From sequence record PQ309151.1: a stretch of 64,000 bases of DNA, one strand, 5' to 3'. Every line of letters begins with the position of its first letter. The first letter of the stretch is position 1. This document shows positions 3,508 through 58,175 of this stretch, piece by piece. A program made the translations under genes and the position numbers. A model generated the notes under the pieces. The model saw only the letters and a program-made list of their open reading frames with translations. It did not search any database and was not told the DNA's origin.

Positions 3508-6426
3508 ATGGGCACTATTCGTGACATCATGAACGACGCACTGGCTGCGTCGTATGACCCTAGTGGTCAGTTCAGAGCGTCAATGCGTACACTAGTTGCG
3601 ATTATGGGGGGAGAGATCGATAATGTTTCTCCAGCCAACCCGGTAGTAGCCACTATTGAAAGCACTGGAGCACTGATTGCAGCTTTCACTGAGAGCATGC
3701 AGACTCAGACACAACGTCTCCTGCAAGTGAATGCCCTGACGCCTGAGGATCTCTATCCGCATATGGCGGACATTCATTTCACCAACATCTTCAACCTGCC
3801 TGCGAAGACGACTTTCACTCTGATTCTGGATAAGAAGGAAATCCTGAATTCGATGAAGCCGATTGCCGGTACGATGTCGAGTAAGGTGACGATCCCGAGG
3901 GATACGTACTTCACCATCTCGGATTATGTCTTCGGTATTCACTATCCGATTGACATCGTCCAGCAGGTGCACGGTGGCATTCGTGTTCAGTACGACACGA
4001 GTGAGACGACGGCACTGCAGGCACTCTCCACCAACATCCTGAATACCCGTGAAGTCCAACGCGATGGCGTGACGTATCTCGCAATCGACATTGATGTCTT
4101 TAACTTCACGATCACGAGCAAAACGCCGACGGTCACGCAAGGTACGACCTTTAGCTTCAACGTGGCGATCACGGATCTGTATTACGCAACCCGTGTCTAC
4201 ATGACGAATGCTGATGGTTCGTCCACCGAGATCCCGGTGACCTACAGCGAGAAGATCTATGATCCTCTCAAACCGTGTGCTGTGGTGAAGTTGAGTGATG
4301 GGAATGTAAACATTTCCGTTCCGCAAATCTACATCAACCAGGGTGTCATTCTGGGTGTGTTGCGTTGCGACGTTTACACCACGAAGGGTCCTTTGCAGAC
4401 TGATTTCTCCAGCTTTGCCATTGGCTCGGTTGGGTATCGCTTCAGAGACCTCGATAAGAACGCTGTAACGACGTATACGGCCCCGATGCAGCAATTGGAT
4501 ACCTGCACCCTACTCGCAGAGAAGCCAGTCTCTGGGGGCGCTCTGGCGATGACCTTCGACGAGTTGCGCACAGCCGTGATTGCAGATGCGATTGGGGACC
4601 CCAACATCCCGATCACGCCTGCTCAGATCCAGAACTTCATCACCCGTCTGGGTTATGACGTCATCAAGAACACCGACATCGTCACCGACCGTGTGTTCCT
4701 GGGTACGAAGAACATGCCGGACCCGACGGATCCGTCTTTACTCACTGCTGCGAACGCTTCTATCGAAACGATGAATGCGGCGTTCTCCGATCTGATCGGC
4801 AACTCGGCAGTGTTGGACAACACGTCGGATTCCAACTCCATTACCTTGACGCCTAAGGCCATTTATCAGCTGGTCGACGGTATGCTCAAGCTGGTGGATG
4901 ATTCCACGCTCGCTTCGATCAATGCAATGCGCAGCGATCTGAAGGCAACGTACATCACCAATGGTGGTTTCCTCTATTCGCCGTATTACTACGTGCTGGA
5001 TAAGAGCAACAACCAGTTCCGTCTGGCTCCGTACTACCTGGATAATCCCCAGGTTCTGTCGCAGACATTCGTGGCCGACAACGAAGGCACGCTCCTGCAA
5101 GTCAACACCAACGGTTACACGCTGGAGAAGACCGATACGGGCTACAAACTTCGACTCACGGTCAAGTCCAATGACGACTACAAGGCTTTGCTGGATACGG
5201 ACGTACAGTGTATCCTCGGCTTCAAGTCGCCGACAGAAGAAGACCGCTGCTGGATGGTTGGTACGCTTTATGGCACCGACCCTCAAAGCAAGGAACGGAT
5301 CTATGAATTCGATCTGAACTCCAACTTCGCGATGGATGTGACGGATCGTATCGATTTCCGTAACTTCAAGATGTACGACACGACCAACAAGACGATCTTT
5401 GCGGATCTCACGCAAGACTTCACGGTTATCTATGCGTCCCAATCGCAAATGGGTAACCTCTTCGTGCCTGGTTTGATTGACGCACTGCTTCCGCGTTATC
5501 TTGTCGGCATGAACAGCAAGGCAATCTGTCAGGAAAAGCTTTCGCTGCAATTCGGTCAGGCTTTGTCCAACCTCTGGGCACGTGCTCGTTCGGTTGCTTC
5601 CACGATCGAATACGAAACGTATCCGACTGACGTTATCCTGCGTTACCCGGATGATGTCTGGAAGGTGGATCCTGCCACCAACAGCCAGATCTTCATGGTC
5701 AATGGTCAGCCCACTCGCATCAAGCTGCACGCGAAGGATGATCCGATGCTGGACGTGAACGGTCATCAGCAAGTCCAGTATCCGGCAGGTTCGATCAAGT
5801 ATGACTACACACAGAACCCGCCTGTACCGATCGTGAAGAACGTTCGTTATCTGAAACATCGCTTCGAGTTGTTCCTGATCGAAGGTGTCTATGCGTTCAG
5901 TAACGACGACATCGCGGTTGCCTATCGTAACACTGTTGCTCAAACGGTGGCTTCGTGGGTGACGACCGACATGGTGAACGTTCAGAAGGCTTCGATGGAT
6001 AAGACGCGAGTCTACTTCTATCCGAAGACTATCTTCGGCACCATCGAGGTTGTGGTGGCCGATGGCATCATCCAGCAAATCTCGGCAGGTCAGCGTTTCG
6101 ACGTTGCACTGACTGTGACGAAGGAAGTTTACCAGGATGATGTCAAACGTCAGCTGTTGACTGATCAGACGACGACGGTAATCGCCGCCTATCTGAAAGG
6201 TCGGACGCTCTCCAATAGCGATATCGTGGAGAAGCTGCGTGACAGCTACGGTGACGACGTGCTGGATGCTCAGGTGTCGCTCTTTGGCGATGCTGCGAAC
6301 ATTCCGGTCATGCAGCTGGTCAATGAAGTTCACTGCTGTGGTATTCGGAAACGACTGGTGTCGCGTGACGACAACAAGCTGGTCGTGGAAGAAGACATCA
6401 ACGTGACCTTCACGATGATTCAGTAA
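3508..6426 (+). CDS. Large baseplate (wedge-like) structural protein (phiKZ gp87-like)
   Basis: 972 aa, beta-rich; ITPAQIQNF segment reminiscent of baseplate-wedge motifs; size and synteny. Confidence 0.6.
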   Translation: MGTIRDIMNDALAASYDPSGQFRASMRTLVAIMGGEIDNVSPANPVVATIESTGALIAAFTESMQTQTQRLLQVNALTPEDLYPHMADIHFTNIFNLPAKTTFTLILDKKEILNSMKPIAGTMSSKVTIPRDTYFTISDYVFGIHYPIDIVQQVHGGIRVQYDTSETTALQALSTNILNTREVQRDGVTYLAIDIDVFNFTITSKTPTVTQGTTFSFNVAITDLYYATRVYMTNADGSSTEIPVTYSEKIYDPLKPCAVVKLSDGNVNISVPQIYINQGVILGVLRCDVYTTKGPLQTDFSSFAIGSVGYRFRDLDKNAVTTYTAPMQQLDTCTLLAEKPVSGGALAMTFDELRTAVIADAIGDPNIPITPAQIQNFITRLGYDVIKNTDIVTDRVFLGTKNMPDPTDPSLLTAANASIETMNAAFSDLIGNSAVLDNTSDSNSITLTPKAIYQLVDGMLKLVDDSTLASINAMRSDLKATYITNGGFLYSPYYYVLDKSNNQFRLAPYYLDNPQVLSQTFVADNEGTLLQVNTNGYTLEKTDTGYKLRLTVKSNDDYKALLDTDVQCILGFKSPTEEDRCWMVGTLYGTDPQSKERIYEFDLNSNFAMDVTDRIDFRNFKMYDTTNKTIFADLTQDFTVIYASQSQMGNLFVPGLIDALLPRYLVGMNSKAICQEKLSLQFGQALSNLWARARSVASTIEYETYPTDVILRYPDDVWKVDPATNSQIFMVNGQPTRIKLHAKDDPMLDVNGHQQVQYPAGSIKYDYTQNPPVPIVKNVRYLKHRFELFLIEGVYAFSNDDIAVAYRNTVAQTVASWVTTDMVNVQKASMDKTRVYFYPKTIFGTIEVVVADGIIQQISAGQRFDVALTVTKEVYQDDVKRQLLTDQTTTVIAAYLKGRTLSNSDIVEKLRDSYGDDVLDAQVSLFGDAANIPVMQLVNEVHCCGIRKRLVSRDDNKLVVEEDINVTFTMIQ

Positions 6427-6437: not shown

Positions 6438-6471
6438 CATACACACCTGGGCTTACGCCCAGGTGTGTATG
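6438..6471. terminator. Hairpin between convergent genes (CATA-stem-GTAA loop-stem-TATG)
   Basis: CATACACACCTGGGC-TTAC-GCCCAGGTGTGTATG, perfect 15-bp inverted repeat, no U-tract. Confidence 0.7.
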
Positions 6472-10132: not shown

Positions 10133-12274
10133 GTGCCTGAAATTGTCCTACGCCTCATAAAAAAGGTGCGAAATAGAATGGATAATATTCTGTTGCTCAA
10201 CAAGCGACATAAAACCGCAGTTTACCCCAGTGATCTACTGGTAGTTGACATCGATAGAACCTGTCCTATCCTTGGAAATCCTTTTCCATTGAAAGACCAC
10301 AATGACGATGAAGAACGCGATTCTGTAATCCGCGAATACCGTCGTCATTTCGAAAAAGAATACGCTGCTAACGGTGTACTCACGAAACGAATTCATGAAT
10401 TAACGGACCTGGTTCTCTCTGGTAAGCGGATCGGTCTTAGATGCTGGTGTAGCCCTAAACGGTGTCACGGCAATGTAATCATTTCAAAAATCCGAGAACT
10501 ACTGGAAGGAAACATGTCTGAATCGCCGCAAAATCCCAGTAAAGAGTTTCTGAACTATCCTTTCGCAAAGGAAGACATCGACTATACGGAATGCCGGTTT
10601 GCGATCCACATTCCGAAAAACAAACATGACGAGAAGGGTATCGACCTTCACATGGTGAAGGAAGTCATCCACTTCAAGGATGGCACGGTCAAACCGTGGG
10701 TTCGATACATTCCGAACTACCAGTGCAAATTCTGGACGACGAAGCCTCATGTTCGTAACGGCAAGTTTGCACACAAGCAGAAGAAAGAGTGGGAATCACT
10801 CGACAATCTGGTTGAAGGTCAAGCTACGGCTTCCGGAATGGGCTTTGCAGTTGCTCGTGCATTGGACCAGATGCGTCTTGCTGATCGTATCTTCGATCTG
10901 AAAGATTCGCCTTACGTCTACGGTCTGGATATTCCGTCGACAGTGCAGTTGAAGCACGACTACACTGTGCGGATGCAAGGTAAGGCAGATACGCCGTTTA
11001 CCATTGCCTATTCGGATACGGAAACGAACATGCTGGGCATCGAAGAAGGTGCAAGCAAACACATCATCATGCAGTCCCTCTTCCATGAAGATGGTCGACT
11101 GTTCACGGTGATCCTCGAAGACTTCGTGAAGACCCTGCCTAACCCGCAGAAAGATCTTCGTGCCCTCTACGACGAACACATGCCTGCTCAGGGCAAGGAT
11201 CTCGTTAAAGAGTGGGAAATCGCAATCGTCAAAGAACCGATCGACATCGTCAAGGCAATTTTGCAACGTTGCCATACGTGGCAGCCTGACTTCCTGTCGT
11301 TCTGGAACATGATCTTCGACTTGGACAAGATGATCGAATGCGTGGAGAACGCTGGTTATCGTGTCGAAGACATCTTCTGCGATCCTCGTCTGCCGCGTGA
11401 GTTACGCTATGCTTTCTTAAAGCGTGCTAATCCGTCCAAGACGTCGGCTTCAGGCCGTTTGATGACCAAGAAGCCTGCTGACCAATGGCATAGCTTCCTG
11501 TGTCCTGCCTCGTTTTACATCATTGACCAGATGGCTACCTACCGCTTCGTTCGTAAGTCGAAGCAGTTGGAAAAGTCTTACGGTCTGGATGACATTCTGG
11601 GCAAGGAACTCGAAGGTCTGGGTAAGCTCAAGCACAAGCCTGCTGAAGGTTTGACTAAAGCTGAATTCCACATCTTCATGCAACAGAAGTATCCTGGCGA
11701 GTATGTGATCTATCACATCTGGGATGCGGTCTGTATGCACCTGTTGACGTTGAAGACGAAGGATCTGTCATTCTCGTTGCCAGGTACGACGGAGTTCTCG
11801 GACTTCGTGAGCTTTGAATCGGAACCGAAGCGCTATATCCACAAGTTCCATTTCTACGCATTGGAAAACCATCGATGCGTGACTGGTGTATCCAGTAAAG
11901 CTCTGGTGCAAGCGTACGACGAGATGACTATCTCCACCAAAGGTCACATCGTCACACTTGAACCACACTTGACTGTAGATTCTGGGATGAAGATCTTCAA
12001 CGATTATCCCGAGTTACAGACAAACTTCTACGGCCACAATGCTGACCTGGATGTGAAGTCCAGTTATCCGTACGGCCAGTGGGTTTTCAACATGTCGCGT
12101 CAAACGACTGTTCGTGAACTCATCGAGATCGAAGGTGTGCGAGATCATACTCGTCGCATCCAAGGTCTTAACATCTCCGGTGGACGCAGTAACGCAGTTG
12201 AATTCTGTACTGAGGTGTTCGGTCTTCCGACTCTTGCTGAACTCGACAAAATCTACGATCAGGCAAATGCATAA
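10133..12274 (+). CDS. polB: Split family-B DNA polymerase, 3'-5' exonuclease subunit (phiKZ gp82-like), with an in-frame N-terminal DUF4326-like domain
   Basis: ExoI SDTET, ExoII NMIFD, ExoIII YHIWD and pol motif A DVKSSYP; N-terminal GNPF...LRCWCSPKRCHG; likely starts at ATG 10178 and an internal ATG at 10514 with a GGAAGGA RBS. Confidence 0.85.
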   Translation: MPEIVLRLIKKVRNRMDNILLLNKRHKTAVYPSDLLVVDIDRTCPILGNPFPLKDHNDDEERDSVIREYRRHFEKEYAANGVLTKRIHELTDLVLSGKRIGLRCWCSPKRCHGNVIISKIRELLEGNMSESPQNPSKEFLNYPFAKEDIDYTECRFAIHIPKNKHDEKGIDLHMVKEVIHFKDGTVKPWVRYIPNYQCKFWTTKPHVRNGKFAHKQKKEWESLDNLVEGQATASGMGFAVARALDQMRLADRIFDLKDSPYVYGLDIPSTVQLKHDYTVRMQGKADTPFTIAYSDTETNMLGIEEGASKHIIMQSLFHEDGRLFTVILEDFVKTLPNPQKDLRALYDEHMPAQGKDLVKEWEIAIVKEPIDIVKAILQRCHTWQPDFLSFWNMIFDLDKMIECVENAGYRVEDIFCDPRLPRELRYAFLKRANPSKTSASGRLMTKKPADQWHSFLCPASFYIIDQMATYRFVRKSKQLEKSYGLDDILGKELEGLGKLKHKPAEGLTKAEFHIFMQQKYPGEYVIYHIWDAVCMHLLTLKTKDLSFSLPGTTEFSDFVSFESEPKRYIHKFHFYALENHRCVTGVSSKALVQAYDEMTISTKGHIVTLEPHLTVDSGMKIFNDYPELQTNFYGHNADLDVKSSYPYGQWVFNMSRQTTVRELIEIEGVRDHTRRIQGLNISGGRSNAVEFCTEVFGLPTLAELDKIYDQANA

Positions 12275-12276
12275 AG

Positions 12277-12320
12277 CATAGGCTCCTACTCCTAGCCGCA
12301 AGGCTAGGAGTAGGTCTATG
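12277..12320. terminator. Hairpin between convergent genes (GCAA loop, CATA/TATG flanks)
   Basis: CATA-ggct-CCTACTCCTAGCC-GCAA-GGCTAGGAGTAGG-tc-TATG. Confidence 0.7.
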
Positions 12321-12324
12321 TCTG

Positions 12325-13029
12325 TCAGCTAACGAATTCAAGACAAGGACGCCAGCCGTAAGCTGCAGTGCCTCCACCGCTGGTATATGTCTGTTGAGCA
12401 CAATTCGCGATGGTGGATGTATTACCTCGTATTCCTGCCGTTGTGGTGTATCCAGAACCTGAAAGAACGTTTGCGACCCATTCATTGTACCCAGTCAAAC
12501 TTGCATCGAAGCCCAAATCAATCAATGCATAGGGACTTGCTATTTTAGAGCCACTATAAGTGGTTATGTGAGAATCAGTAACGATCGGATAAAACAGGTT
12601 ATTCCATTCACTACCGACCGTCGCCGCGGTGTCTGTTCCATTTACTGGTCCAGGTACCGGATTAGCCAGAAACCCTTGGAGGAGTCGAACTTTGTAAATA
12701 TGGGACGCAATCGTAACCTGAGCGGTCTGAGCGACAGCCGATTGACCGGATGGTATCGGATCGCCTGTGCCACCGGAACCATAAACCGCTTTGGCATTAT
12801 AGATACTTGTCCAGGAAACTCCTTGACGCACTGGCAGTTTCGGGACGTACAGCGTTTTTCCATTGTAAGAAAACTTCAACCAATTTGTTGCTGTATTGAT
12901 CGCAGTTCCGATAGACAATCCAATGGCTGAGGCTAGACTCACCCCGTCGATAAAATTAGCGGATGTAACTTCACCTAAAAAAGGGATTGTACTGGTGATT
13001 TTCTTTTTGAGTAATAGAGCCGATAACAT
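12325..13029 (-). CDS. phiKZ gp131-like paralog family virion (tail/baseplate fibre) protein with LLLKKK N-terminal tag
   Basis: FLGEV...IDGVSLASAIGL...WLKF...LYVPK.P.R..VSW..IY....VYG and C-terminal GWRPCLE match my recollection of this family. Confidence 0.7.
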   Translation of the reverse strand: MLSALLLKKKITSTIPFLGEVTSANFIDGVSLASAIGLSIGTAINTATNWLKFSYNGKTLYVPKLPVRQGVSWTSIYNAKAVYGSGGTGDPIPSGQSAVAQTAQVTIASHIYKVRLLQGFLANPVPGPVNGTDTAATVGSEWNNLFYPIVTDSHITTYSGSKIASPYALIDLGFDASLTGYNEWVANVLSGSGYTTTAGIRGNTSTIANCAQQTYTSGGGTAAYGWRPCLEFVS

Positions 13030-13032
13030 AAC

Positions 13033-13614
13033 TCACCATGAACTAAAACCAGACGGCGGCGGGTACTGAAACGTCGTAGTCAGGTCCACAATCGATGAAC
13101 CTGCAGACCCGTATGGGCTACAGCACATGGGATAGAACGTCGTTCCGGCACTATAAGCCGACAGAGTAAGCAAGCCTTGTGCGACTCCATTCCTATAAAA
13201 CTGCAGCTGATTATTAGTAAAGTTAAGGGCGACGCCGATATAATCACCGGTGGTGAAGGTCGTCAGGCCATAAGGCGCACGGGTATTTGCCCCGTAAATG
13301 ACCTGTCCTCCAGAACCGTACCAGAGAACTTCCTGGATCCCGTTCTGGAAAGGAATCGCCAAGCTTGTAGATGTAGTACAGATCCCCACCAGCGGAGTGT
13401 ACGGACCTTCGCTTTGTATGATCTTGGCTTCAAAATACCACTTGCCTGTCGACGCATGGCTTATGGTTCCTCTTGCTCCTGCACCATAAGGCGTAAACGT
13501 CGCTCTTAGATTACCATTTGATAGAGTACCACCAGATCCCACTGCTGCCGGATCCCAAGTAACAGCACTCGATGTAGCAACGACTTTCTTTTTTAACAAT
13601 AGAGATTCATGCAT
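13033..13614 (-). CDS. SPRY/B30.2 domain protein, LLLKKK-tagged
   Basis: TWDP...LSNGNL...GKWYFE...VGI...GDYIGVAL...FYRNG...YP; ends PSGFSSW. Confidence 0.8.
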   Translation of the reverse strand: MHESLLLKKKVVATSSAVTWDPAAVGSGGTLSNGNLRATFTPYGAGARGTISHASTGKWYFEAKIIQSEGPYTPLVGICTTSTSLAIPFQNGIQEVLWYGSGGQVIYGANTRAPYGLTTFTTGDYIGVALNFTNNQLQFYRNGVAQGLLTLSAYSAGTTFYPMCCSPYGSAGSSIVDLTTTFQYPPPSGFSSW

Positions 13615-13617
13615 GAT

Positions 13618-14196
13618 TCACCAGAGCCCATAACCTGAAGGCATTGAACCGAAGTACTTCGGTGTATCTGGAATCGTGACGATCGATGTACCTTGAGTGG
13701 ACTGAGGACTCGCTGCACCAAACCAGAACGTCGTGACGGTCGGCAAGTACGTATTAAGATTCAACTGCGTCATCGCCACATTGTTTCTGAAAAACTGAAG
13801 CAGTCTGGCATCCAGATCGACTGCAAATGCAACCGTATCACCCGTCGTAAACGATCCATAACCAAAACGAATATTGGCGCCGTAGATGATCTGTGGTCCT
13901 GAACCATACCACATCAATTCACCAGCACTGATCCATGGAGTATTGAATGTCGTGTTTTGAGAAACCAGACCAATCAATGGCGTGAAGCTGCCTTCTGACT
14001 GAGTGATGACGCATTCGAAATACCATTTCCCAGAACTACGGGAAGTAGTACCAAAAGCACAACCTCCTGAGTTACCAAGATTGGCTGTCCTGTTGTTGTT
14101 TGATAGAGTAGCCGCGTTGCTCTTCATTGCAGGATTAAATGTACTTCCTGTCGCTGCAATTACTTTCTTTTTCAAAAGCAATGAGGATTCGAACAT
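13618..14196 (-). CDS. SPRY/B30.2 domain protein, LLLKKK-tagged
   Basis: TFNP...LSNNN...SGKWYFE...GDTVAFAVDLD...FFRNN; ends PSGYGLW. Confidence 0.8.
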   Translation of the reverse strand: MFESSLLLKKKVIAATGSTFNPAMKSNAATLSNNNRTANLGNSGGCAFGTTSRSSGKWYFECVITQSEGSFTPLIGLVSQNTTFNTPWISAGELMWYGSGPQIIYGANIRFGYGSFTTGDTVAFAVDLDARLLQFFRNNVAMTQLNLNTYLPTVTTFWFGAASPQSTQGTSIVTIPDTPKYFGSMPSGYGLW

Positions 14197-14199
14197 AGT

Positions 14200-14793
14200 T
14201 CACCAGAGACTATATCCAGATGGACAGTACTGAGGTGCCGCGATCCAGTCGACGATTGTGGTACCAGTTGCCGAGTTTGGACTCGATGTACAGGGGAAAA
14301 ACGTAGTTGCCAATGAGTAGTTATTGGGTGACCCATAGGTAATGGTCGGTTGTGCTACGCCATTTCTGATGTAGAAGATCGTTTTGGCAGTAAAATCAAT
14401 CGCGCATCCGATCACATCGAGCATCGCAGGCGTTGTGCCGTAATTGATTCGCTGATTGGCCTGATAGATAAGCTGAGCGCTACCCGAACCACCGTAGTAC
14501 CAGAACAACTCATTCGAGTTGGTATTCCATGGAGACTGGTAATTATAAGCACCCATTACGCCGACCATTGGCATAAACGAAAAGCTATTACCTTCAAACT
14601 GGGTAAGTTTTACTTCGAAATACCACTTACCTGAGTTATGCGATACGTTGGCAAAAACCGCGCCACCAGAATTACCACAGTTGGCTCTAAGATTCCCGTT
14701 CGAAAGCGTAACGCTAGCCGCTTTGTTTGAAGGACTCCACGTGGTAGTCGTGCCTGCCAACTTCTTCTTGGAAAGGAGAAATGATTCCTGCAT
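14200..14793 (-). CDS. SPRY/B30.2 domain protein, LLLKKK-tagged
   Basis: TWSP...LSNGNL...SGKWYFE...DVIGCAIDF...YIRNG; ends PSGYSLW. Confidence 0.8.
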   Translation of the reverse strand: MQESFLLSKKKLAGTTTTWSPSNKAASVTLSNGNLRANCGNSGGAVFANVSHNSGKWYFEVKLTQFEGNSFSFMPMVGVMGAYNYQSPWNTNSNELFWYYGGSGSAQLIYQANQRINYGTTPAMLDVIGCAIDFTAKTIFYIRNGVAQPTITYGSPNNYSLATTFFPCTSSPNSATGTTIVDWIAAPQYCPSGYSLW

Positions 14794-14833
14794 AGGAAAC
14801 CCGTATTAGAAGTTCAGTGTCATAGGATCCGAA

Positions 14834-14872
14834 CATAGACCTCCTACTGGGCTTTCGCCCAGTAGGAGTGTC
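14834..14872 (-). terminator. GAAA-loop hairpin followed by TATG on the minus strand
   Basis: CATA-gac-CTCCTACTGGGC-TTTC-GCCCAGTAGGAG. Confidence 0.65.
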
Positions 14873-14873
14873 A

Positions 14874-15611
14874 TTACACCAACATGTCGATCACTCGGCC
14901 AACAGAAGCCTTTACGTCGTCCAGAGAGCGTGTTGCGTCGATGGAGAAGAGCGGTCCCATTTCCAGGAACGAGCGGTTCTTCCATTGAAGCGAAAAGTTC
15001 TGGATGAGATTCTGGAAGAATTCATCCGGCTTCGTTTCGAATGCGTCTTTGGCGACCGACGTAATGTCCGTACGCGCATTCACGCGTGCCCGCGAAGTTG
15101 CGACATCGATGTCCAGATAGATCGCGACGTATTCCTGGATCTGCTTGTACAGCCAGGCACGTTTGTCTTGCGGAAACTGGGCGAGGATGTTGGGGATGTT
15201 CAGATGGTAATCGAACATCGCATCCATCATCTTCTTCGGGATGCCTTGGGTGTAATGCTGATACACCCAGGTCGTATCGTTCCAGCGGTCGCTGATGACG
15301 ACCTTGCCTGCCAGCAAGGCCGGAATGATTTCTTCAATCAGAACACGGCGACGCAGATACAGAATACAGGATAGAACAGCCGGCATCGGAATACGCTGAT
15401 TGATCCATGCATCACGCATGAACTTCGCTTCATCCCCCGACGGATAAGCTGCCACAACCACATGGTCGATCCCCTTAGTCGCCAGCACATCGCTGATGTG
15501 CATGACCATCGTCCCTTTACCGCTTCCGTCAATACCTTCGACGGCCCAGAAGCGCGATACGTTGTTGTACTTGATGTTAGCCAGCCCTACCGTCTGCACA
15601 TCCATGATCAT
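14874..15611 (-). CDS. tmk: Thymidylate (dTMP) kinase
   Basis: P-loop VEGIDGSGKGT, VISDRW motif, IYLDID...R lid region. Confidence 0.9.
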   Translation of the reverse strand: MIMDVQTVGLANIKYNNVSRFWAVEGIDGSGKGTMVMHISDVLATKGIDHVVVAAYPSGDEAKFMRDAWINQRIPMPAVLSCILYLRRRVLIEEIIPALLAGKVVISDRWNDTTWVYQHYTQGIPKKMMDAMFDYHLNIPNILAQFPQDKRAWLYKQIQEYVAIYLDIDVATSRARVNARTDITSVAKDAFETKPDEFFQNLIQNFSLQWKNRSFLEMGPLFSIDATRSLDDVKASVGRVIDMLV

Positions 15612-15712
15612 CCCCCATAGTTAAGATCAAGTTATTTCGACATCTAATAAAAAATAAGGCAAAAAAAAATCCCCGGAATTACCCGGGGAAAAATCACGCA
15701 CCGCAGAGGGCA

Positions 15713-16483
15713 CTACATGCGGCGCATGTAGAGGCTCAACGGCACGTAGGACGGATTCACAAAACGGTACATTGCAGCAGATGCTTGTTCTTTTTCGCGA
15801 AGATTATTCGCGTAGCGAACGAAGTGCTCAAGCTCGCCCTTGGTCTTGGCTGTGCCGACGTATACCGAATTACGTTCCGAGATGGAACTGTAGTACACTT
15901 CGACGCCGCCTTCCTTGGAGCGAGCATATGCCTGAACGCCATCAGGGATGACGATGTCGTGAACGGTCTTGATGTAGTTCCGGTTGTACTTCACCGGATA
16001 CCACAGGGACTTGTTCACTTCGCTGGTGAACTGCTTCAGGTTCTCGAAGTAGTAGTTCGCCGCTTCCAGGACCATATGCTTGTAGTCCGGGCTGTGGAAT
16101 TCCTGCGCAAGTTCACTGCCCGAAAAGACTCGGACGACGACCTTACGAGGACCCCGCATTGAGGCGACCATCTTCGAAGGCAGAATGAAAACGCCATGGC
16201 CAGGAATGACCTTGACGCCTTCTTCCTTCTTGTCGAACAGCTGACGCAGCTTCCCACGCGAATGGAAAGCCTTCGACTGACCGAGCGCGACGTTATACTC
16301 GCGGAATGCTTCAGCCGACACTTCATCGTTCACGATGGGCGTGAACACATGGCTTTGGCGAACACTGTTCACCCGCCATGCTTTATTGCCATCGAATGCG
16401 CTGGTGATGGTCAGGTCCGAATCGATTGGGAATTCACGATTCATGATGCGCACTACGTTTTTGCCGACGGAGATCTGTTGCAT
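15713..16483 (-). CDS. Hypothetical protein
   Basis: 256 aa, AAGGA RBS upstream, phage-like codon bias; no recognised motif. Confidence 0.6.
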   Translation of the reverse strand: MQQISVGKNVVRIMNREFPIDSDLTITSAFDGNKAWRVNSVRQSHVFTPIVNDEVSAEAFREYNVALGQSKAFHSRGKLRQLFDKKEEGVKVIPGHGVFILPSKMVASMRGPRKVVVRVFSGSELAQEFHSPDYKHMVLEAANYYFENLKQFTSEVNKSLWYPVKYNRNYIKTVHDIVIPDGVQAYARSKEGGVEVYYSSISERNSVYVGTAKTKGELEHFVRYANNLREKEQASAAMYRFVNPSYVPLSLYMRRM

Positions 16484-16517
16484 GTCGATTTTATCCTTAC
16501 GTTTTGAAAGTTGAAGC

Positions 16518-17273
16518 TTAAGCGGCGGTGTTGCCGATTTCCTCAGAGTTTGCTGCTTCCGGACTTTCGCCCGATGCTGCCTTTTGACGAGCCTTGATGA
16601 TGCAGATCGCCATGTCCACGGCCACCAGGAAGTGAGCGTGGGAAGTCATATACGGATTCTTGGGAACAGAAACCGTACTTGCCAGCCGCCGCGGATCACC
16701 GGCTTCTTCATAGTTCTCCAGCGGCGCAGTCGTCTGATACGCATCGATCATTTCCTTGGTAGCGGCAATGACTGTGTCGACCCAGACATACTTCTTTTTC
16801 CATGCAGCCTTGTAATAGCGCTTGGCGTCCTCGACACTATAGCCGGCCAGAGCGAGCGTCGCCAGGCAGCCTTGTTCGAAGATCGCACGGGTGCGAACAG
16901 ACAGTGGAAGCGCGACGATCGTTCGCCCAACTTCCTTCTCGTCTTGCTTGCGGATATTTACCCGCAGATCCCATTCGCCGATGCGATGCGGAACGCGGCT
17001 CCAGCCGTGGAAGAATTGCACCAGGTCCTTCTGGCGTCCTTCCCCGACGATCTTTTCGATCTCTGCTACGGCCGCTTCGTCAGCGGGGCTTGCGAGAGTT
17101 ACAGGTGCCGGACGGTGAGCCGGGCGATGCACAGCTTGATGGTTGGTTCCACGACTGAACGTCGAAACATGCGGCCGATGCCGCTGGCCTTCTTGAGACT
17201 GGGGCGTATTCTTTTTGTTGCCACCGAATCGATGTGCCATATTGAGATAAGTCATAACAGACTCCCAAGACAT
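16518..17273 (-). CDS. Hypothetical protein with basic, disordered N-terminus
   Basis: 251 aa; first gene downstream of an early-type promoter. Confidence 0.6.
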   Translation of the reverse strand: MSWESVMTYLNMAHRFGGNKKNTPQSQEGQRHRPHVSTFSRGTNHQAVHRPAHRPAPVTLASPADEAAVAEIEKIVGEGRQKDLVQFFHGWSRVPHRIGEWDLRVNIRKQDEKEVGRTIVALPLSVRTRAIFEQGCLATLALAGYSVEDAKRYYKAAWKKKYVWVDTVIAATKEMIDAYQTTAPLENYEEAGDPRRLASTVSVPKNPYMTSHAHFLVAVDMAICIIKARQKAASGESPEAANSEEIGNTAA

Positions 17274-17353
17274 AATTTTGGTAAGCGAGGAATTCGCTTG
17301 TTTTCACCAACAGAACAGAACTCGGCAAAAGGTTTTAGCCGGAAATTCATTTT

Positions 17354-17379
17354 GATTATATATTGTTGATTTTTTCTGC
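17354..17379 (-). promoter_or_regulatory. Early-type phage promoter motif
   Basis: Minus strand GCAGAAAAAATCAACAATATATAATC; resembles the copies at 44569 and 54325. Confidence 0.5.
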
Positions 17380-17411
17380 ATTATATCTGCATGTCAGACA
17401 AATAAAAACAG

Positions 17412-17449
17412 ACATAGACCAATACCGGAGGCCTCTCGGCCTCCGGTAT
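17412..17449 (-). terminator. GAGA-loop hairpin followed by TATG and a T-rich run
   Basis: ATACCGGAGGCC-TCTC-GGCCTCCGGTAT with CATA at 17413-17416. Confidence 0.7.
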
Positions 17450-17451
17450 CG

Positions 17452-18003
17452 TCATTTCTTTGGCGGTTGATTACCCGACTGTTGAGCCAACATCTTCTCC
17501 AATTGCTTGATGGCGCTGCTTCCACCACCCAGCAATTTGGCACTATGCTTCTTGGCCGAGTTAATCACCTTCAAGAAATCGCGTCGAGGATAACGAATTA
17601 ACTCATCGAACGAAAACCCGAAGATTTCATGCACGCGGTTCTCAGCGAACTGGTCGAGACGGAAGTCCAACGGATCCACACGAGCCAGATCCTCAAGCGG
17701 CGAGCAGAAGAGCAGAGGCCACGGAACGTTCTTGTCGTCCGGGGCATCGTGATTGTAAATGCCAAAAGCGGTTTCGTACTTCATCCGCATGAACAATTCC
17801 GCATCCACCACGTTGGGTAGCTTGGCGTTGGTCATGGCATCCAGAATCACGTTTACCGGAGACCGGTTTCTGTCTTCTACTCTCGCCAACTCGGGTTCTA
17901 GTCCGATGTGTCCTCCAGACTCCTCGATGAGAGTCCAAGCAACTTCTGCTCGACCAGCTGAAAAAAAACCGATACCGCATCGACCGCGATGAGGCGAGGC
18001 CAC
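17452..18003 (-). CDS. Probable conserved phiKZ-like protein; true start probably downstream, near 17830-17890
   Basis: The first ~35 codons overlap the upstream gene; the core AELFMRMKYETAFGIY...FGFSFDELIRYP looks coding. Confidence 0.5.
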   Translation of the reverse strand: MASPHRGRCGIGFFSAGRAEVAWTLIEESGGHIGLEPELARVEDRNRSPVNVILDAMTNAKLPNVVDAELFMRMKYETAFGIYNHDAPDDKNVPWPLLFCSPLEDLARVDPLDFRLDQFAENRVHEIFGFSFDELIRYPRRDFLKVINSAKKHSAKLLGGGSSAIKQLEKMLAQQSGNQPPKK

Positions 18004-19424
18004 TTGTCGCCGGACACCGTGTCCTCGTACTCGTTGACCGAGGTCGTCGCAATAATTGCGACTTGTGTGTTGTTGATGTAATCGCTGATCGCCTTGAAGA
18101 ACTTCTTGGAGATCGAGTCGGAAGCCGACAAGGACACGAGAACCTTGTCCACGTTTTCACGCGTGGTGTACAGTTCGCCGTCTTCCTCGATCGACTTGAC
18201 GTAGTGCGAATACTGGCGCAGACGGGAAGCCTTAGCCAACTGGCTAATGTACTGCATGCGCTTCTGGTCGGTTGCTTCTGCGCCGAGAGCTTCGTGAACC
18301 GCAGCGTTGATCTCGTTGATCCACTTCTCGCCGGAGTCGAAGTACTCTCGCAGGCTGGGCGTGTACAGATGCAACTTCACGCCATCGCCGATGTCGACAA
18401 CCGTGTTCTGGTTGAAGACGAACTGGTCCTTGTAGTCCTTGATCGTCTTGAGCGTCATCGGCTGTTCGATACGCTTGACCATGTGTGCCAGTTGCTCATC
18501 CTTGAACATCTTGCCGTTCATGAAGAGCGCCTTGCGCAGGTCGATGATCTGCGAGATTTCTTCCTTCGGCAGCTTCGTGTCTTCTGTGAAGACCGCCCGG
18601 GACATCGGGAAGCCATTCGGGTAGACCGAGTTTGCGACCGACAGAGCGATCAGAGGCAAGTCGTTGATCGTGATATGGTCGACCAGGTTTTCCTTGGGCA
18701 GGTCGTTGACAGTCGTTTCGACGAGCGATGCGAGCCATGCTTCGGTAACAGCTTTGGCCGTGAAGACCGCGTTGTTCGCGAACATGAGACCATGCGTTGC
18801 GCGGCCGAGTTTGATCGGCTCAGCAATGATCGTGCGCCACAGACCGATGATGTCGTATTCTTCCAGCGGCTTGACAGTCGCGTAGAAGCCCGAACCCACC
18901 AGCGGAACCTGAACGGGCGAACCCAGTCCCAGTCGAGCACGCACCGACAACGTCAGGCGTTCCGAACTCATCTTCGAGCCACGACCCTTGTTCGAGAACT
19001 TGGGACGACCCACGTTGATGTTCTGGCCGGCGTACGTCAGAGCATTGCGCCATTCAGCATTCGGATCTGCCAGTGCGTCTTCGAATACGCCATGAGCAGG
19101 AACCGAACGGAAGCCGTTGAGCAGCGTCTGATACCAGTTCACCGCGTCTTCGTTGACATCGACGTCACCCATCTTGGATGCAGCCATGTCGTCGTTGACG
19201 CGACTTGCCGTGTCAGGCAGAAGAGGAATCAGGATACCCTGAAACTCCTTCAGTTCTTCTTCACCCGGAGCAGGCGACATGAGAGGCGTCTTGCTCTCCC
19301 AGTTCTTTGCCTGCTTGGGCGTCACGACGTTCTGCGGGTCGATGCTGACCGGCGTTTCGTCGGGCATGCGCAGTTCGGCATCATCTGCCGGACTTTGATT
19401 TTCGTCTTCAGGAGCGATTGCCAT
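17898..19424 (-). CDS. Conserved virion/baseplate-hub-like protein (phiKZ gp77-like)
   Basis: 508 aa; GLGSPVQVPLVGSGF motif recalled from phiKZ-like phages; synteny next to the vRNAP subunit. Confidence 0.5.
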   Translation of the reverse strand: MAIAPEDENQSPADDAELRMPDETPVSIDPQNVVTPKQAKNWESKTPLMSPAPGEEELKEFQGILIPLLPDTASRVNDDMAASKMGDVDVNEDAVNWYQTLLNGFRSVPAHGVFEDALADPNAEWRNALTYAGQNINVGRPKFSNKGRGSKMSSERLTLSVRARLGLGSPVQVPLVGSGFYATVKPLEEYDIIGLWRTIIAEPIKLGRATHGLMFANNAVFTAKAVTEAWLASLVETTVNDLPKENLVDHITINDLPLIALSVANSVYPNGFPMSRAVFTEDTKLPKEEISQIIDLRKALFMNGKMFKDEQLAHMVKRIEQPMTLKTIKDYKDQFVFNQNTVVDIGDGVKLHLYTPSLREYFDSGEKWINEINAAVHEALGAEATDQKRMQYISQLAKASRLRQYSHYVKSIEEDGELYTTRENVDKVLVSLSASDSISKKFFKAISDYINNTQVAIIATTSVNEYEDTVSGDKWPRLIAVDAVSVFFQLVEQKLLGLSSRSLEDTSD

Positions 19425-19439
19425 GTAACTGGTTCCTTG

Positions 19440-20201
19440 TTAGCCGAGTTTCGCGGTGGCTTCTTCGACCGCCGGCAGCGTGAACGAAGCATCCTTGACG
19501 CCCGGTTCCAGACTCACAGGCGCTGCGTCGAGGAACTTCGCACCTTCAGCCGGAGCATTGATGATTTCCTGCACCGACAGCGCGTCGCCTGCGATACCTT
19601 CCATGCCTTCGGCCGGCGCTTCGACTTCCTTGGCCATTGCCGGAACATCGCCTTCCTTGAACACGACGTCCGTCACGCCAGATGCACGCGCGGCTTCGAT
19701 CTGCTCGATCGTCAGTGCGTCTTGCGCTTCGAGCAACTGCTTGAGCGCGGCGTTGTAGATCAGGTTCAGTTCGCCGATGAGCGGCTGGAACTTGTTGAAG
19801 AGGTCGATGTCGAATGCCTGGTAGGCTTCGAAGATGCGGTAGGCTTTCGAGAGCTCTTCGTAGCTCAGGCACAGCTTGCGGATGTTGCCGTGGCTGTCCC
19901 AGAGATCCTGGAAGTCCTTGGCCATTTCGGCGGCCAGCGGCGGGATCTTCGCCTGGATTTCGTTGAACTGGGTTTCCTGGCCGTTCTTGGCGATCTTGGC
20001 CAAGACGATCGGGTGGTTGTACTGTGCGAACAGTTCAGCCAGCTTGACGATGTTCTTCTGGCTGCGTGCGTGTATTTCTTTCAGCTGGTACCAGCAGCGG
20101 GAGGTCTTCTCGCGGTCAAACGTTTTCTTGCCGCCCGTGATGCCGGCTGCGGCACGACGTTCTGCGTCTTTCTGACGGCGGCTTGCGGATTTCTGCGTCA
20201 T
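19440..20201 (-). CDS. Helical protein with basic N-terminus and acidic A/E/P-rich C-terminus
   Basis: 253 aa, strong codon bias, RBS upstream. Confidence 0.55.
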   Translation of the reverse strand: MTQKSASRRQKDAERRAAAGITGGKKTFDREKTSRCWYQLKEIHARSQKNIVKLAELFAQYNHPIVLAKIAKNGQETQFNEIQAKIPPLAAEMAKDFQDLWDSHGNIRKLCLSYEELSKAYRIFEAYQAFDIDLFNKFQPLIGELNLIYNAALKQLLEAQDALTIEQIEAARASGVTDVVFKEGDVPAMAKEVEAPAEGMEGIAGDALSVQEIINAPAEGAKFLDAAPVSLEPGVKDASFTLPAVEEATAKLG

Positions 20202-20316
20202 TTGTCATATCCCCAGTAGGAATTTTAGATGGTTCACCAGACGATAACTCAGGGCAAATAAAAAAGTATTTATTTACTCTGTTGTGTAGATCCTCTGATG
20301 AATAAGGAGAACCACT

Positions 20317-21213
20317 ATGCTCGATCAGAGCTTGGACAACTTTTTGGAACAGGCATTGCCACCGGAGAAGTACCGCCTCTACGTGGACATTATCTCCTAC
20401 TTGGAGAGCATAGAATACGACACCATCGAGAGTGAGCTTTTGAATCTCATTTACATGTCGATTGGCGACGAGAACGAAAAGGTTCCGAAGCCTGAATCGA
20501 CCTGTGTGGACGAGATCTACGGCCACCTGCGTGAATGCATGATCTCCCAGCTTTCGCAAAGCGGCATTGTCGCGAACGAAGAGGTCAAGCTAAAGGATGT
20601 GTACGATTTGGCCATTGGCCTTTTCCACATCTCGACCCACGAAGACATTGCAGGCATTGTTGCTTGCTGCAGTCTCGATGAGGCACCGATCCATCAGCTG
20701 TGCGAAGTACTCCAGTTGGTGACGACGGTTAGCGCGGATCACTGGATGACTGTGATCGACGAAATTCAACCCGAAGTCATTTCGCGTATTGTCGAAATGA
20801 GTAAACAGACGATCGACTCCGAGTATCAAGTTATGGAGGAGACGGCTGAATATTTACAGAAGCTGCGGATCTATTCCGAGTACTGCGTCAAGAAGGGCTT
20901 TACTGACCTGAAAGTATTCAAGCTGGTTGGCGAAGTTGTTCTCGGCCAGGACTTCACGACGTATCTGGATTCGGGCGTCCTGCATGAACTCTTCGAAGGT
21001 GATCAGATGGAACGTCTGGCGCTGGAGATGTATGGCATGGCGCTGATGTCCAACGATGCATCGAAGGATCCGATCGGTTCTATCCGCACTGTCGTCGAGT
21101 CGTATATCGAAGATACGCGGCGTATCGTTGCCTTGAACTCGCAAGTTGGGTTGGTCAATGCTGAGTTCGTCAAGTTCTTCCAAATTACCAGCCAGGGCCT
21201 GAACAATGGATAA
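20317..21213 (+). CDS. Conserved virion-associated protein (phiKZ gp79-like)
   Basis: 298 aa, acidic; AAGGAG RBS; overlaps the start of the vRNAP subunit gene. Confidence 0.55.
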   Translation: MLDQSLDNFLEQALPPEKYRLYVDIISYLESIEYDTIESELLNLIYMSIGDENEKVPKPESTCVDEIYGHLRECMISQLSQSGIVANEEVKLKDVYDLAIGLFHISTHEDIAGIVACCSLDEAPIHQLCEVLQLVTTVSADHWMTVIDEIQPEVISRIVEMSKQTIDSEYQVMEETAEYLQKLRIYSEYCVKKGFTDLKVFKLVGEVVLGQDFTTYLDSGVLHELFEGDQMERLALEMYGMALMSNDASKDPIGSIRTVVESYIEDTRRIVALNSQVGLVNAEFVKFFQITSQGLNNG

Positions 21214-22504
21214 ACGTGACTTTTTCATGCTCTGCATGAAAGAACACAAGTATCGGAATAAGCGCTGGGTGTTGCGTGCTTTCGCTTTGGTGCGAGAGAA
21301 CAAGACACCTGAGACTTCCGCTGCTCTTGACATCATTCAAACGCCTGCCGGACACTTTTACAAGCACCCGGAAACGGGTGAGCTTGAACAGATTCGTGGT
21401 GATGTGAAACCTGGAAAGCCGATGTATGGCATCAAGGAAAAACTCACTGTGAAGAAGGGAGAGCTTCCCGGCATTCTCAAGGACGAGGAAACTGACTACG
21501 GTCGTATCCTCTACTACTGCATCGTCTTCCTCCATTCATTTGACGGGCACGTGCCCTTTAAAAATCAGCAAATGGACATGGGGAAATTTGAAGATGAGCT
21601 CGCTGCTAAACTACAGGACGATGTCGAAGAGGGTCAGCAAGAGAACCCTGCTCTTTTCTATCCTCGTCAACTCGTACGTTATTACGAGGCCATGGCTTAC
21701 ACACGGGGTCTTGCCATGCTCTGCGTACCTGCCGCTTCTCCGAAATCGATGACCATCGATCCGAAGGTATTGAAGCGTCGGGATGAGATCTTCAATGATC
21801 CGAGCATTGACCTGAACAATCAGGCAGTGGCGGCATCAGTGGAGAAGGAACTGGTGGACATGGACCGCGATTCGTTCAAGGACGATTCGGCCTCCGGCTT
21901 CCTTATCAACAAAAAAGACTTCGCGGTTATTCGCAAGAAGCGTTTCATTTCATTCGGCTCGGGGGCTGGCCTCACACCTGACTCCAAGACAGCATACGTT
22001 AAGAGTAGCTTGAACGAAGGTGTGGATGTAAAACAGTTCAAGGACTACAACGATGAAATGCGTACTGGTTCGTATAAGCGCGGCGTTGAAACGATGTTCG
22101 GTGGTGAACTGGACAAGTGGCTCGTGCGCGAATCTTCGAACATCCGCGTTCTACCGGATGACTGTGGTAGCGTTGTCGGTATTCCAACCCTCATCACGGA
22201 ACTCAACAAAACCCAGTGGCTTGGCTTCAACATCGTCGAAGGACGTGGTGTCGGCAAGCTGACTGAAGATAACATCGGCACTTATATGGGCAAGGTTGTT
22301 CTGCGTCGCTCACCAGCTGCATGCTGGGCTGCGAAGCCGGACTATTGCACGGTGTGCCTGGGCGAAAAGCTCTCGATGAACCCGGACGCAATTTCCATCG
22401 CGTTCTCGCAATATGGTCACGATTTCATGGGTGAATCCATGTCCGCAATGCACGGCAAGTCATTGTCGATTGCTCGGATGGATCTCGTGGCTGAAGCTTC
22501 TTAA
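21206..22504 (+). CDS. rpoC: Virion RNA polymerase beta'-like subunit (phiKZ gp80-like)
   Basis: 432 aa; bridge-helix-like RTGSYKRGVET...GELDK, DDCGS and the Zn site RSPAAC...DYCTVCLG. Confidence 0.8.
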   Translation: MDKRDFFMLCMKEHKYRNKRWVLRAFALVRENKTPETSAALDIIQTPAGHFYKHPETGELEQIRGDVKPGKPMYGIKEKLTVKKGELPGILKDEETDYGRILYYCIVFLHSFDGHVPFKNQQMDMGKFEDELAAKLQDDVEEGQQENPALFYPRQLVRYYEAMAYTRGLAMLCVPAASPKSMTIDPKVLKRRDEIFNDPSIDLNNQAVAASVEKELVDMDRDSFKDDSASGFLINKKDFAVIRKKRFISFGSGAGLTPDSKTAYVKSSLNEGVDVKQFKDYNDEMRTGSYKRGVETMFGGELDKWLVRESSNIRVLPDDCGSVVGIPTLITELNKTQWLGFNIVEGRGVGKLTEDNIGTYMGKVVLRRSPAACWAAKPDYCTVCLGEKLSMNPDAISIAFSQYGHDFMGESMSAMHGKSLSIARMDLVAEAS

Positions 22505-22530
22505 ATCTTTTCTTTCTGGAGAATATTCTC

Positions 22531-23550: not shown

Positions 23551-23565
23551 TCGCAGCAATGCGGT

Positions 23566-23609
23566 CATAGACATCCTCCTGGCGCAAGCCAGGAGGATGT
23601 CTAGTTATG
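23566..23609. terminator. Hairpin between convergent genes (GCAA loop, CATA/TATG flanks)
   Basis: AGACATCCTCCTGGC-GCAA-GCCAGGAGGATGTCT, 15 bp. Confidence 0.7.
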
Positions 23610-23613
23610 CCGT

Positions 23614-24474: not shown

Positions 24475-24491
24475 ACTCTTCTTAGTTTATG

Positions 24492-24896: not shown

Positions 24897-24897
24897 A

Positions 24898-25173: not shown

Positions 25174-25228
25174 TTTAAAAACCCCTGCTTGTTATTACTG
25201 TTACTGGTTTCGGTCGAAAACCAAATAA

Positions 25229-25426: not shown

Positions 25427-25454
25427 AAAACCTCAAAAAAATAAGTAGACAGCA

Positions 25455-25498
25455 AAAAGGGCGGTACAGAGAGGCCGAAGCCTCCCCATACCGTGCCT
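25455..25498 (-). terminator. Rho-independent terminator (UUCG loop plus U-tract)
   Basis: Minus strand GGCACGGTATGGGGAGGC-TTCG-GCCTCTCTGTACCGCCC-TTTTT. Confidence 0.8.
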
Positions 25499-25499
25499 A

Positions 25500-57581: not shown

Positions 57582-58175
57582 TCAAATCCTGATCACCGTC
57601 AGTTCAAGAAGTTGCCAGGTACAAGGGAATGCATACGTTCCCTGGATAACCTGTTCGGCTCCATTCAGGTAGCTTCCTAACACCCAATCCCAGGTATTCG
57701 AGAATGTCCCAGGATAGTTCAGGGAATAAATCTGGGTGCCGTTGAGCGTAATGGTGTAAACACCATTGACTCTTTTAAAAACAAGAACCTGCTCAATTCC
57801 AAAACCTGAGATCGAGCCACTGGTTGTAGCCAGAAGGTTGTCATAAACATACTCGACTGCTTTATTTGCATTGACTGAGATCATCCACGAAGGAGCATCA
57901 TTGCCCTGTTTGTATCGTGAAAGAAGATCCAGTCGTGTTCCACCAATTGTAGTCACTTTAAAACGAATTGTGATCTGACAATTTTCAGCAACTGGTGAAG
58001 GTGTTCCAGAATAAGGAATTCGGATGTAGTCTACTACCGAGCCGCCTGCAAACGAATACGTGTTACCTGTTTTGGTCACTCCAGCTGAATTGGAAAGACC
58101 TCCGCCCCAGCTTGCGATAGTGATGCCTGAGCCGCCTACTACAGCAGACTTTTTCAGAAGGAAAGCTTCATGCAT
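57582..58175 (-). CDS. ConA/LamG-like protein, FLLKK-tagged (true start 58175)
   Basis: MHEAFLLKK; ITIRFK...LVFKRVNG.YTITLNG...WVLG. Confidence 0.65.
   Translation of the reverse strand: MHEAFLLKKSAVVGGSGITIASWGGGLSNSAGVTKTGNTYSFAGGSVVDYIRIPYSGTPSPVAENCQITIRFKVTTIGGTRLDLLSRYKQGNDAPSWMISVNANKAVEYVYDNLLATTSGSISGFGIEQVLVFKRVNGVYTITLNGTQIYSLNYPGTFSNTWDWVLGSYLNGAEQVIQGTYAFPCTWQLLELTVIRI

Follow-up and report, generated by a model that had tools for sequence, protein, structure and literature searches.

A short N-terminal peptide on unrelated small binding proteins of Ralstonia jumbo phage RsoM3USA: a possible docking address for interchangeable virion modules

Introduction

What does a ten-residue peptide do when it stands at the N-terminus of proteins whose bodies are otherwise unrelated? 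The question is raised by a locus of Ralstonia phage RsoM3USA (PQ309151.1, 225,638 bp), where four adjacent genes, here called cassette 1, encode proteins that share such a peptide, the tag. The locus lies in a stretch of 64,000 nucleotides (nt) that corresponds to record positions 124001-188000, given that its bases 12000-15000 match record positions 136000-139000 with 100% identity, and is referred to as the window; coordinates are those of the window unless marked as record coordinates. An original prediction, made from the letters of this stretch alone, had read the four proteins as one gp131-like domain and three SPRY/B30.2 domains, and proposed that the tag plugs interchangeable binding heads into the phage particle. 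We report that the tag is carried by 14 genes of RsoM3USA, that its peptide sequence is under selection, and that it is possibly a shared docking address for virion proteins.

Ralstonia is a plant bacterium. From its genes for PhuZ tubulin, multisubunit RNA polymerases and a split DNA polymerase, RsoM3USA is a bacterial phage of the phiKZ type. Most closely related to it are the jumbo phages RSL2, RSF1, FLC6, FLC8 and FLC4-x of Chiangmaivirus, together with Burkholderia phage SURPRISE13. By sequence comparison, RsoM3USA is a phiKZ-like jumbo phage and a genus-level relative of Chiangmaivirus. Jumbo phages have many small virion proteins without an assigned role, and a head family of 20 members in phage SPN3US has been without a function since 2017.

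Results

Fourteen genes of RsoM3USA share an N-terminal tag

Cassette 1 consists of four minus-strand open reading frames (ORFs) that lie back to back, with 3 nt between neighbors (Table 1). Their translations begin exactly as had been quoted, with MLSALLLKKK, MHESLLLKKK, MFESSLLLKKK and MQESFLLSKKK. The general pattern of the tag, which spans about 10 residues, opens with Met and a variable residue. Glu usually follows, then one or two further variable residues, a stretch of two or three Leu/Met and a closing run of two or three Lys. The original prediction had named random occurrence of the tag as a way for its idea to fail. This is contradicted: the tag expression matched 9 of 62 proxy genes in the window, whereas 2000 residue shuffles gave 0.17 matches on average and never more than 4.

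When the whole genome was scanned piecewise, 14 tagged genes were found: four in cassette 1, four at 55649-58175 (cassette 2) and six outside the window. Their bodies comprise four SPRY domains, five Laminin_G_3/ConA-like (LamG) domains (one of them just below the Pfam cut-off), one F5/8-type-C discoidin domain, one gp83-like domain and three domains of no assigned family. The claim that one tag sits on unrelated folds is thus borne out by the wider census. In PHROG matches, the LamG, SPRY and discoidin bodies correspond to parts of large virion and baseplate proteins from other phages.

The tag hardly varies, in contrast to the bodies behind it, which are either unrelated or just 30-50% identical. 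In a set of 25 tagged proteins drawn from seven phages, Leu occupies the two positions ahead of the basic run in 23 and 19 cases, and Lys occupies the three basic positions in 24, 25 and 20; residue 3 is Glu in 14, Ala in seven and Asp in three. The following eight residues are rich in Thr, Ala, Ser, Val and Gly. Among the paralogs, the Leu residues of the tag are encoded by all six codons (TTA, TTG, CTA, CTC, CTT and CTG). The sequences 5' of the tagged genes are unrelated, except where the previous gene is another SPRY gene. Variants of the tag occur in other genera, among them those of phiKZ gp83, PhiPA3 gp080 and gp083, and FLC1-1B gp119. Erwinia phage PhiEaH1 has variants on two LamG-like proteins and the rV5-like Cronobacter phage CR3 on one protein, and metagenomic relatives have them too. 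Because the Leu codons vary synonymously and the variants persist in distant genera, selection acts on the peptide and not on the nucleotides.

Structure prediction places the tag outside the folded domain. In the AlphaFold 2 (AF2) model of a SPRY protein, residues 1-10 have a predicted local distance difference test score (pLDDT) of about 52 and no secondary structure, and the sandwich begins near residue 20; in the gp83-like protein, residues 1-12 have a pLDDT below 50. The predicted layout of a tagged protein is therefore tag, flexible linker and globular body. We rejected a signal peptide or lipoprotein reading of the tag from its sequence, which has no hydrophobic core and no Cys.

The Lys run is encoded as AAA AAG AAA in seven of 12 tags. 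In three of these, a preceding TTA creates an A-AAA-AAG slippery heptamer (for example at 13585-13599 and 56273-56287), which is probably mere codon choice. An exact scan of IMG/VR with the back-translated tag returned at least 95 loci. Most located matches (86 of 94) were ORFs of less than 60 amino acids (aa) on AT-rich contigs (median GC 0.36), and among the matches listed the sole true case was an RSF1 gene, so that the scan is uninformative on the wider distribution of the tag.

The first gene of cassette 1 encodes a relative of phiKZ gp83

The gene 1 product had been described as gp131-like, and this description fails. BLASTP against phiKZ gp131 gave E = 2.3, the N-termini of gp131-gp135 are unrelated to that of gene 1, and the gene 1 protein has no sequence match in the PDB; the gp131 family was therefore rejected. 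We take the phiKZ gp131 paralog family to be the base of the tail fibers; the crystal structure of the gp131 C-terminal domain was reportedly published by Sycheva et al. in 2012.

By BLASTP the gene 1 protein is instead homologous to phiKZ gp83 (3e-13, over the first ~210 residues of gp83), to PhiPA3 gp080 (4e-26), gp081 and gp083, and to SPN3US gp145-153 (1e-8 to 4e-5). Further homologs are FLC1-1B gp119 and RSL2 ORF183-185. Like the other members of this family, the gene 1 protein has a domain of about 200 aa that ends in a conserved G-W-R-P-x-L-E motif. It matches PHROGs 1062, 16120, 3589 and 21620, annotated as 'virion structural protein'. The AF2 model of the protein is moderate (pLDDT 65), and a Foldseek search with it against the PDB returned nothing at E <= 0.001.

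Several members of this family are recorded as virion or head proteins in phiKZ, PhiPA3 and SPN3US, which supports a virion role. The record of phiKZ gp83 is annotated 'structural head protein', and its C-terminal half is a Kelch propeller; in a PDB search with gp83 only the Kelch half found matches, to unrelated Kelch proteins. PhiPA3 gp079-083 are annotated 'virion structural protein'. In SPN3US the family is 'paralog family B', whose 20 members were all detected in tailless particles and whose function is not known (PMC5694885). The number of paralogs is large and variable, from 2 in phiKZ to 20 in SPN3US, and the prohead protease processes eight proteins, none of them from family B (PMC5694885). 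The only evidence on location that homology provides points to the head.

The SPN3US family B genes (locus 15394-33155) have conserved N-termini of their own. One set shares a motif of about 25 residues that ends in Asn-Pro, and a second set has an FN3-like start that is also found in RSL2 ORF183/184. RSL2 ORF185 (locus 5204-6232, minus strand) carries a decayed tag, Met-Leu-Glu-Pro-Met-Leu followed by Ala-Ala-Gly-Lys-Ser-Lys.

Three SPRY proteins follow in cassette 1

The three remaining proteins of cassette 1 were correctly predicted to be SPRY/B30.2 domains, as Pfam, PHROG, the AF2 model and Foldseek agree. Genes 2, 3 and 4 score 53.1, 19.0 and 40.8 bits against Pfam PF00622, whose curated cut-off is 26.3 bits. 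Although gene 3 falls under this cut-off, its SPRY domain is 43-44% identical to the other two, and phrog_10080 matches all three (E from 1e-41 to 1e-52). The AF2 model of the gene 2 SPRY (pLDDT 92.1; predicted template modeling score, pTM, 0.88) has the bent beta-sandwich of the SPRY/B30.2 fold, and Foldseek matched it to the SPRY domains of RanBPM/RanBP10, Ash2L, TRIM proteins and DDX1 (E from 3e-13 to 1e-10; template modeling score, TM, 0.67-0.76).

The statement that the three domains share a scaffold and differ in their loops is weakly true. Identity among the three is 45% in strands versus 43% in loops, with the insertions and deletions sitting in the loops; when the fourth SPRY of the genome is included, the values are 45% and 36%. 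A conserved C-terminal Trp-stop of the SPRY proteins gives GGTGA just 5' of the next ATG.

Five distant stand-alone SPRY proteins, from other phage contigs, have a different N-terminal motif, made up of small residues, Gln-Gln and a Leu/Met-rich segment. Their genes adjoin tailspike or portal/capsid genes. The Gln-Gln motif may be an independent tag system.

The cassette 1 locus varies among related phages

The locus between the DNA polymerase gene and the thymidylate kinase gene (tmk) is conserved in seven phages, and the number and lineages of the tagged genes in it differ. RSL2, RSF1, FLC4-4C and FLC8 have two tagged SPRY genes each. FLC6 has one, along with a second SPRY-like ORF whose annotated start is without the tag. 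SURPRISE13 has one gp83-like gene and one SPRY gene, and RsoM3USA has one gp83-like gene and three SPRY genes. Beyond tmk, RSL2 also has three gp83-like genes, of which ORF185 is one. The SPRY proteins of these phages form at least four lineages that are mixed differently in each phage: the gene 3 SPRY is 80% identical to that of SURPRISE13, and the gene 4 SPRY is 64% identical to one SPRY of FLC8 and 56% to one of RSL2.

The block had been described as visibly AT-richer than the core genes. Cassette 1 is indeed lower in GC than the window (0.472 versus 0.513), and the difference is modest; GC at third codon positions is 0.40-0.52 in the cassette 1 genes, which is 1-2 standard deviations below the mean of 0.61 (standard deviation 0.10). 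The hairpins reported on both sides of the block are present (Table 1) and not special to it. They belong to a set of 13 such hairpins with perfect stems found across the 64 kb, and we therefore regard them as general intergenic elements. The hairpin at 12285-12314, lying between convergent genes, is probably a two-way terminator. The sequence (T)CTATG follows four of the 13 hairpins at 1-8 nt on the minus strand (6438-6471, 12285-12314, 14841-14868 and 17422-17449), and the combination is possibly a terminator-plus-promoter module. As a marker of cassettes it was rejected, since hairpins occur genome-wide and TCTATG is not enriched in the window (23 observed versus about 29 expected).

Two SPRY genes of cassette 1, 13033-13614 and 13618-14196, are named 'thymidylate kinase' in GenBank (record 137033-137542 and 137618-138196), a name apparently copied from the true tmk next door. 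SPRY genes are misnamed in the same way in the RSF1, FLC6 and FLC4-11C records. The GenBank coding sequence of the first of the two starts internally, so that the tag is dropped.

Table 1. Tagged genes of RsoM3USA and features that flank cassette 1
Feature	Coordinates	Strand	Evidence or remark
Tagged gene 1, 234 aa: tag, short linker, gp83-like/SPN3US-family-B-like domain	12325..13029	-	ORF, PHROGs, BLASTP
Tagged gene 2, 193 aa: SPRY domain	13033..13614	-	Pfam 53.1 bits, AF2, Foldseek
Tagged gene 3, 192 aa: SPRY domain	13618..14196	-	phrog_10080 4.7e-41; Pfam 19 bits, under cut-off
Tagged gene 4, 197 aa: SPRY domain	14200..14793	-	Pfam 40.8 bits
Tag codons 1-10, gene 1	13000..13029	-	
Tag codons 1-10, gene 2	13585..13614	-	
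Tag codons 1-11, gene 3	14164..14196	-	
Tag codons 1-11, gene 4	14761..14793	-	
DNA polymerase part, convergent with cassette 1	10178..12274	+	Start uncertain; ORF opens at 10133
Perfect hairpin between convergent DNA polymerase gene and cassette 1	12285..12314		Probable two-way terminator
Hairpin downstream of tmk, upstream of cassette 1	14841..14868	-	TCTATG, then ~40 nt to first ATG
Thymidylate kinase (tmk), upstream of cassette 1	14874..15611	-	Constant border of the variable locus in relatives
Cassette 2 tagged gene, 217 aa	55649..56302	-	Full-length match to phrog_6011, 'virion structural protein'
Cassette 2 tagged SPRY gene, 200 aa	56307..56909	-	
Cassette 2 tagged Laminin_G_3-like gene, 223 aa	56909..57580	-	Pfam 25.4 bits, just under cut-off; phrog_3545
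Cassette 2 tagged gene, 197 aa from tag ATG	57582..58175	-	Body without assigned family
Tagged gene outside the window	record 17898-18557		
Tagged gene outside the window	record 22720-23322		
Tagged gene outside the window	record 42444-43172		
Tagged gene outside the window	record 43240-43965		
Tagged gene outside the window	record 43968-44438		
Tagged gene outside the window	record 55083-55916		

Neighbors of the tagged genes

Both cassettes of the window directly adjoin DNA polymerase genes: cassette 2 a divergent family B polymerase (58250-60454) and cassette 1 the second polymerase part (10133-12274). A possible start of the latter ORF (10178-10213, +) is itself tag-like, with Met, Asp, Asn, Ile, three Leu, Asn, Lys and Arg. 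One such start in 62 genes is within chance (0.17 expected), yet this gene adjoins cassette 1. The first gene of cassette 2 (55649-56302) has homologs with tag variants in PhiEaH1 and Cronobacter phage CR3.

Three tagged genes directly follow structural genes, namely a baseplate spike-like gene, the gene of a 1011-aa virion protein and that of a phrog_3293 virion protein, itself followed by a DUF7194 gene. Two RsoM3USA genes without the tag, at record 18561-19088 (+) and 41753-42442 (-), each lie directly after a tagged LamG gene. Their products (phrog_25859 and phrog_36019) have a common N-terminus of repeated Gly-x-Trp-Lys-x-Val, and because of this shared N-terminus the two-gene module of a tagged LamG gene and a tag-less gene appears to have been duplicated.

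Discussion

The tag as a candidate docking address

We tentatively favor the reading that the tag is a shared docking address for interchangeable virion modules, displayed outward from an acceptor that is somewhat likelier to be on the head than on the tail; we consider this possible, short of probable. The tagged proteins would be small accessory binding modules of the virus particle, each made of the ~10-residue peptide, a linker rich in Thr, Ala, Ser, Val and Gly, and one compact beta-rich binding domain. The tag would be a common address that takes all 14 products to one acceptor on the particle. Because all would be addressed to the same site, bodies could be duplicated, could diverge and could pass from one related phage to another while the acceptor stayed as it was. 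The tag and the gp83-like domain would descend from phiKZ gp83 and SPN3US paralog family B, and it is because these are recorded head proteins that a head acceptor seems somewhat likelier. Facing outward, the bodies would act as lectin-like adhesins that bind surface polymers of the host or the environment. Incorporation into the virion, its site, the outward display and the bound target are all things that we infer. LamG, SPRY and discoidin domains of jumbo phages have been linked to virion fibers and decorations (PMC7824862). A virion role is also supported by the PHROG matches of these bodies and by the three tagged genes that directly follow structural genes. Virion proteomics was sought in the FLC6 and SURPRISE13 papers, and none is reported there.

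The plug-in idea of the original prediction is partly supported, and its core has gained strength. A short peptide on unrelated folds, interchangeable cassettes and a tag predicted to lie outside the domain all agree with it. What falls is the anchor to gp131, and with it the link to the tail fiber or baseplate that this homology would have given.

Several observations weigh against the docking address as we have drawn it. The SPN3US family B members are without the tag, and the head location of the family can therefore not be attributed to the tag itself. phiKZ gp83 is absent from both phiKZ cryo-EM models (the capsid and the 40-protein atlas) and from the PDB, and must therefore be flexible, low-copy or internal. 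Eight of the 14 tagged genes lie beside DNA polymerase genes and not beside structural genes. Distant stand-alone SPRY genes sit among tailspike genes, which favors a tail site. Lastly, the SPRY domains of solved structure that Foldseek matched are mostly protein binders, which would also fit a role inside the cell.

A bolder form of the docking address is doubtful. In this form the tag would be a label inherited from the gp83 head family and copied onto at least five unrelated binding folds, with a single capsid acceptor showing a changeable set of a dozen or more lectin-like modules; counterparts of this combinatorial surface display on the head, with other variants of the tag, would exist in phages of Erwinia and Pseudomonas, and even in the rV5-like group.

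Alternative explanations

Docking on the tail, as first proposed, would place the modules at the baseplate periphery, fiber or sheath as auxiliary receptor-binding heads. Stand-alone SPRY and LamG genes of other large phages adjoin tailspike/tail-fiber genes (K1-lyase_C, Peptidase_S74, DUF4376), LamG bodies match 'baseplate wedge subunit' PHROGs, and one tagged gene comes directly after a baseplate spike-like gene. A precedent exists in Klebsiella podophages, whose secondary receptor-binding proteins dock through a short N-terminal peptide that is conserved (PMC6872550, PMC13352976). We nevertheless find a tail site unlikely. Besides the loss of the gp131 link, phiKZ gp83, which is the only tagged homolog with a recorded location, is annotated as a head protein and is missing from the 29 tail proteins that the phiKZ atlas contains, and its domain family is found in tailless SPN3US particles (PMC5694885).

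The head location of the gp83-like family would also suit a packaging signal of the T4 kind. The modules would then be internal, be ejected with the DNA and bind host defense or takeover targets, and their diversity would reflect an intracellular arms race. In T4, a short N-terminal sequence on unrelated, polymorphic internal proteins targets them to the prohead (summarized in PMC5694885). Solved SPRY domains are chiefly protein-protein interaction modules, and the ordered capsid shell of phiKZ shows no gp83. However, the tag does not end in a conserved site of protease type: no acidic residue is conserved behind the Lys run, and the only recurrent one is at position 3, mostly Glu. SPN3US family B also escapes the prohead protease (PMC5694885). 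Proteins displayed on surfaces typically have LamG and discoidin folds or FN3-like N-termini such as those of the related members in RSL2 and SPN3US, and comparative work puts these lectin folds on virion exteriors (PMC7824862). Packaging is thus also an unlikely explanation, and outward lectin-like display is more likely than an internal location.

It is less likely again that the tagged proteins are not part of the virion, with the tag addressing them to a site in the cell (the membrane, the phage-nucleus shell or a chaperone) or controlling their turnover. RsoM3USA codes for PhuZ and belongs to the nucleus-forming group, and the position of eight tagged genes next to replication genes and the tag-like start of the DNA polymerase ORF would fit such a role. 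Yet that start is within chance, several phages have homologs annotated as virion proteins, the lectin folds of the bodies are of an extracellular type, and the tag offers no hydrophobic segment of the length that a signal peptide or membrane anchor needs. Finally, a nucleotide-level element whose peptide has no role (translation initiation or coupling, a slippery A-run or a recombination joint) is nearly excluded: the 3-4 nt spacing of the genes, the GGTGA before the next ATG and the recurrent AAA AAG AAA would suit it, but the Leu codons range over every synonym, the sequences upstream are unrelated unless a SPRY gene precedes, and distant genera retain the peptide motif with different codons and next to different genes.

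Implications

If the docking address is real, a common peptide would explain how families of small virion proteins expand and swap bodies, and it would offer a simple rule, based on sequence, by which accessory virion modules could be recognized in genomes. It would also tie the unexplained phiKZ head protein gp83 to lectin-type surface display. The 14 tagged genes are otherwise 'hypothetical' or misnamed 'thymidylate kinase'. Two annotation errors are set right by this outcome, and the link to the gp131 tail-fiber family proves false.

Comparison with known systems

The closest mechanisms, by analogy, are the docking peptides of Klebsiella podophages and the T4 capsid-targeting sequence, neither of which is homologous to the tag as far as tested. 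In the podophages KP32, KP34 and K11, a short N-terminal peptide joins exchangeable binding proteins to a fixed acceptor (PMC6872550, PMC13352976). The RsoM3USA tag resembles it in form only, as a conserved N-terminal peptide with a variable body; the podophages are another phage group, whereas RsoM3USA has 14 small lectin-like bodies and a putative acceptor. The T4 sequence is likewise short and N-terminal, stands on unrelated polymorphic proteins and is an address for the head (summarized in PMC5694885). It differs in that the prohead protease cleaves it off and the proteins that carry it are internal to the head, whereas the RsoM3USA bodies look like surface lectins.

The domain content reported here is already known. 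A survey of lectin folds in jumbo phages describes Laminin G3, SPRY and discoidin folds in the same phage group and proposes a role in adhesion (PMC7824862). That survey describes no common N-terminal tag or cassette-wise variation, and in most of its cases the domains lie within large fiber proteins, whereas those of RsoM3USA are stand-alone proteins of about 200 aa (PMC7824862). We consider three points new, since none was found described in the literature searched: the tag common to these proteins, the descent of that tag from gp83, and its occurrence on 14 genes with at least five types of body.

By homology the nearest system is that of phiKZ gp83, PhiPA3 gp080-083 and SPN3US family B, which have the ~200-aa domain in common with gene 1. 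phiKZ gp83 and PhiPA3 gp080 and gp083 also carry a clear older form of the tag at the N-terminus. In these known members the N-terminal domain carries a Kelch propeller or other extensions, whereas in RsoM3USA the tag is also found on SPRY, LamG, discoidin and other bodies that are without the gp83-like domain.

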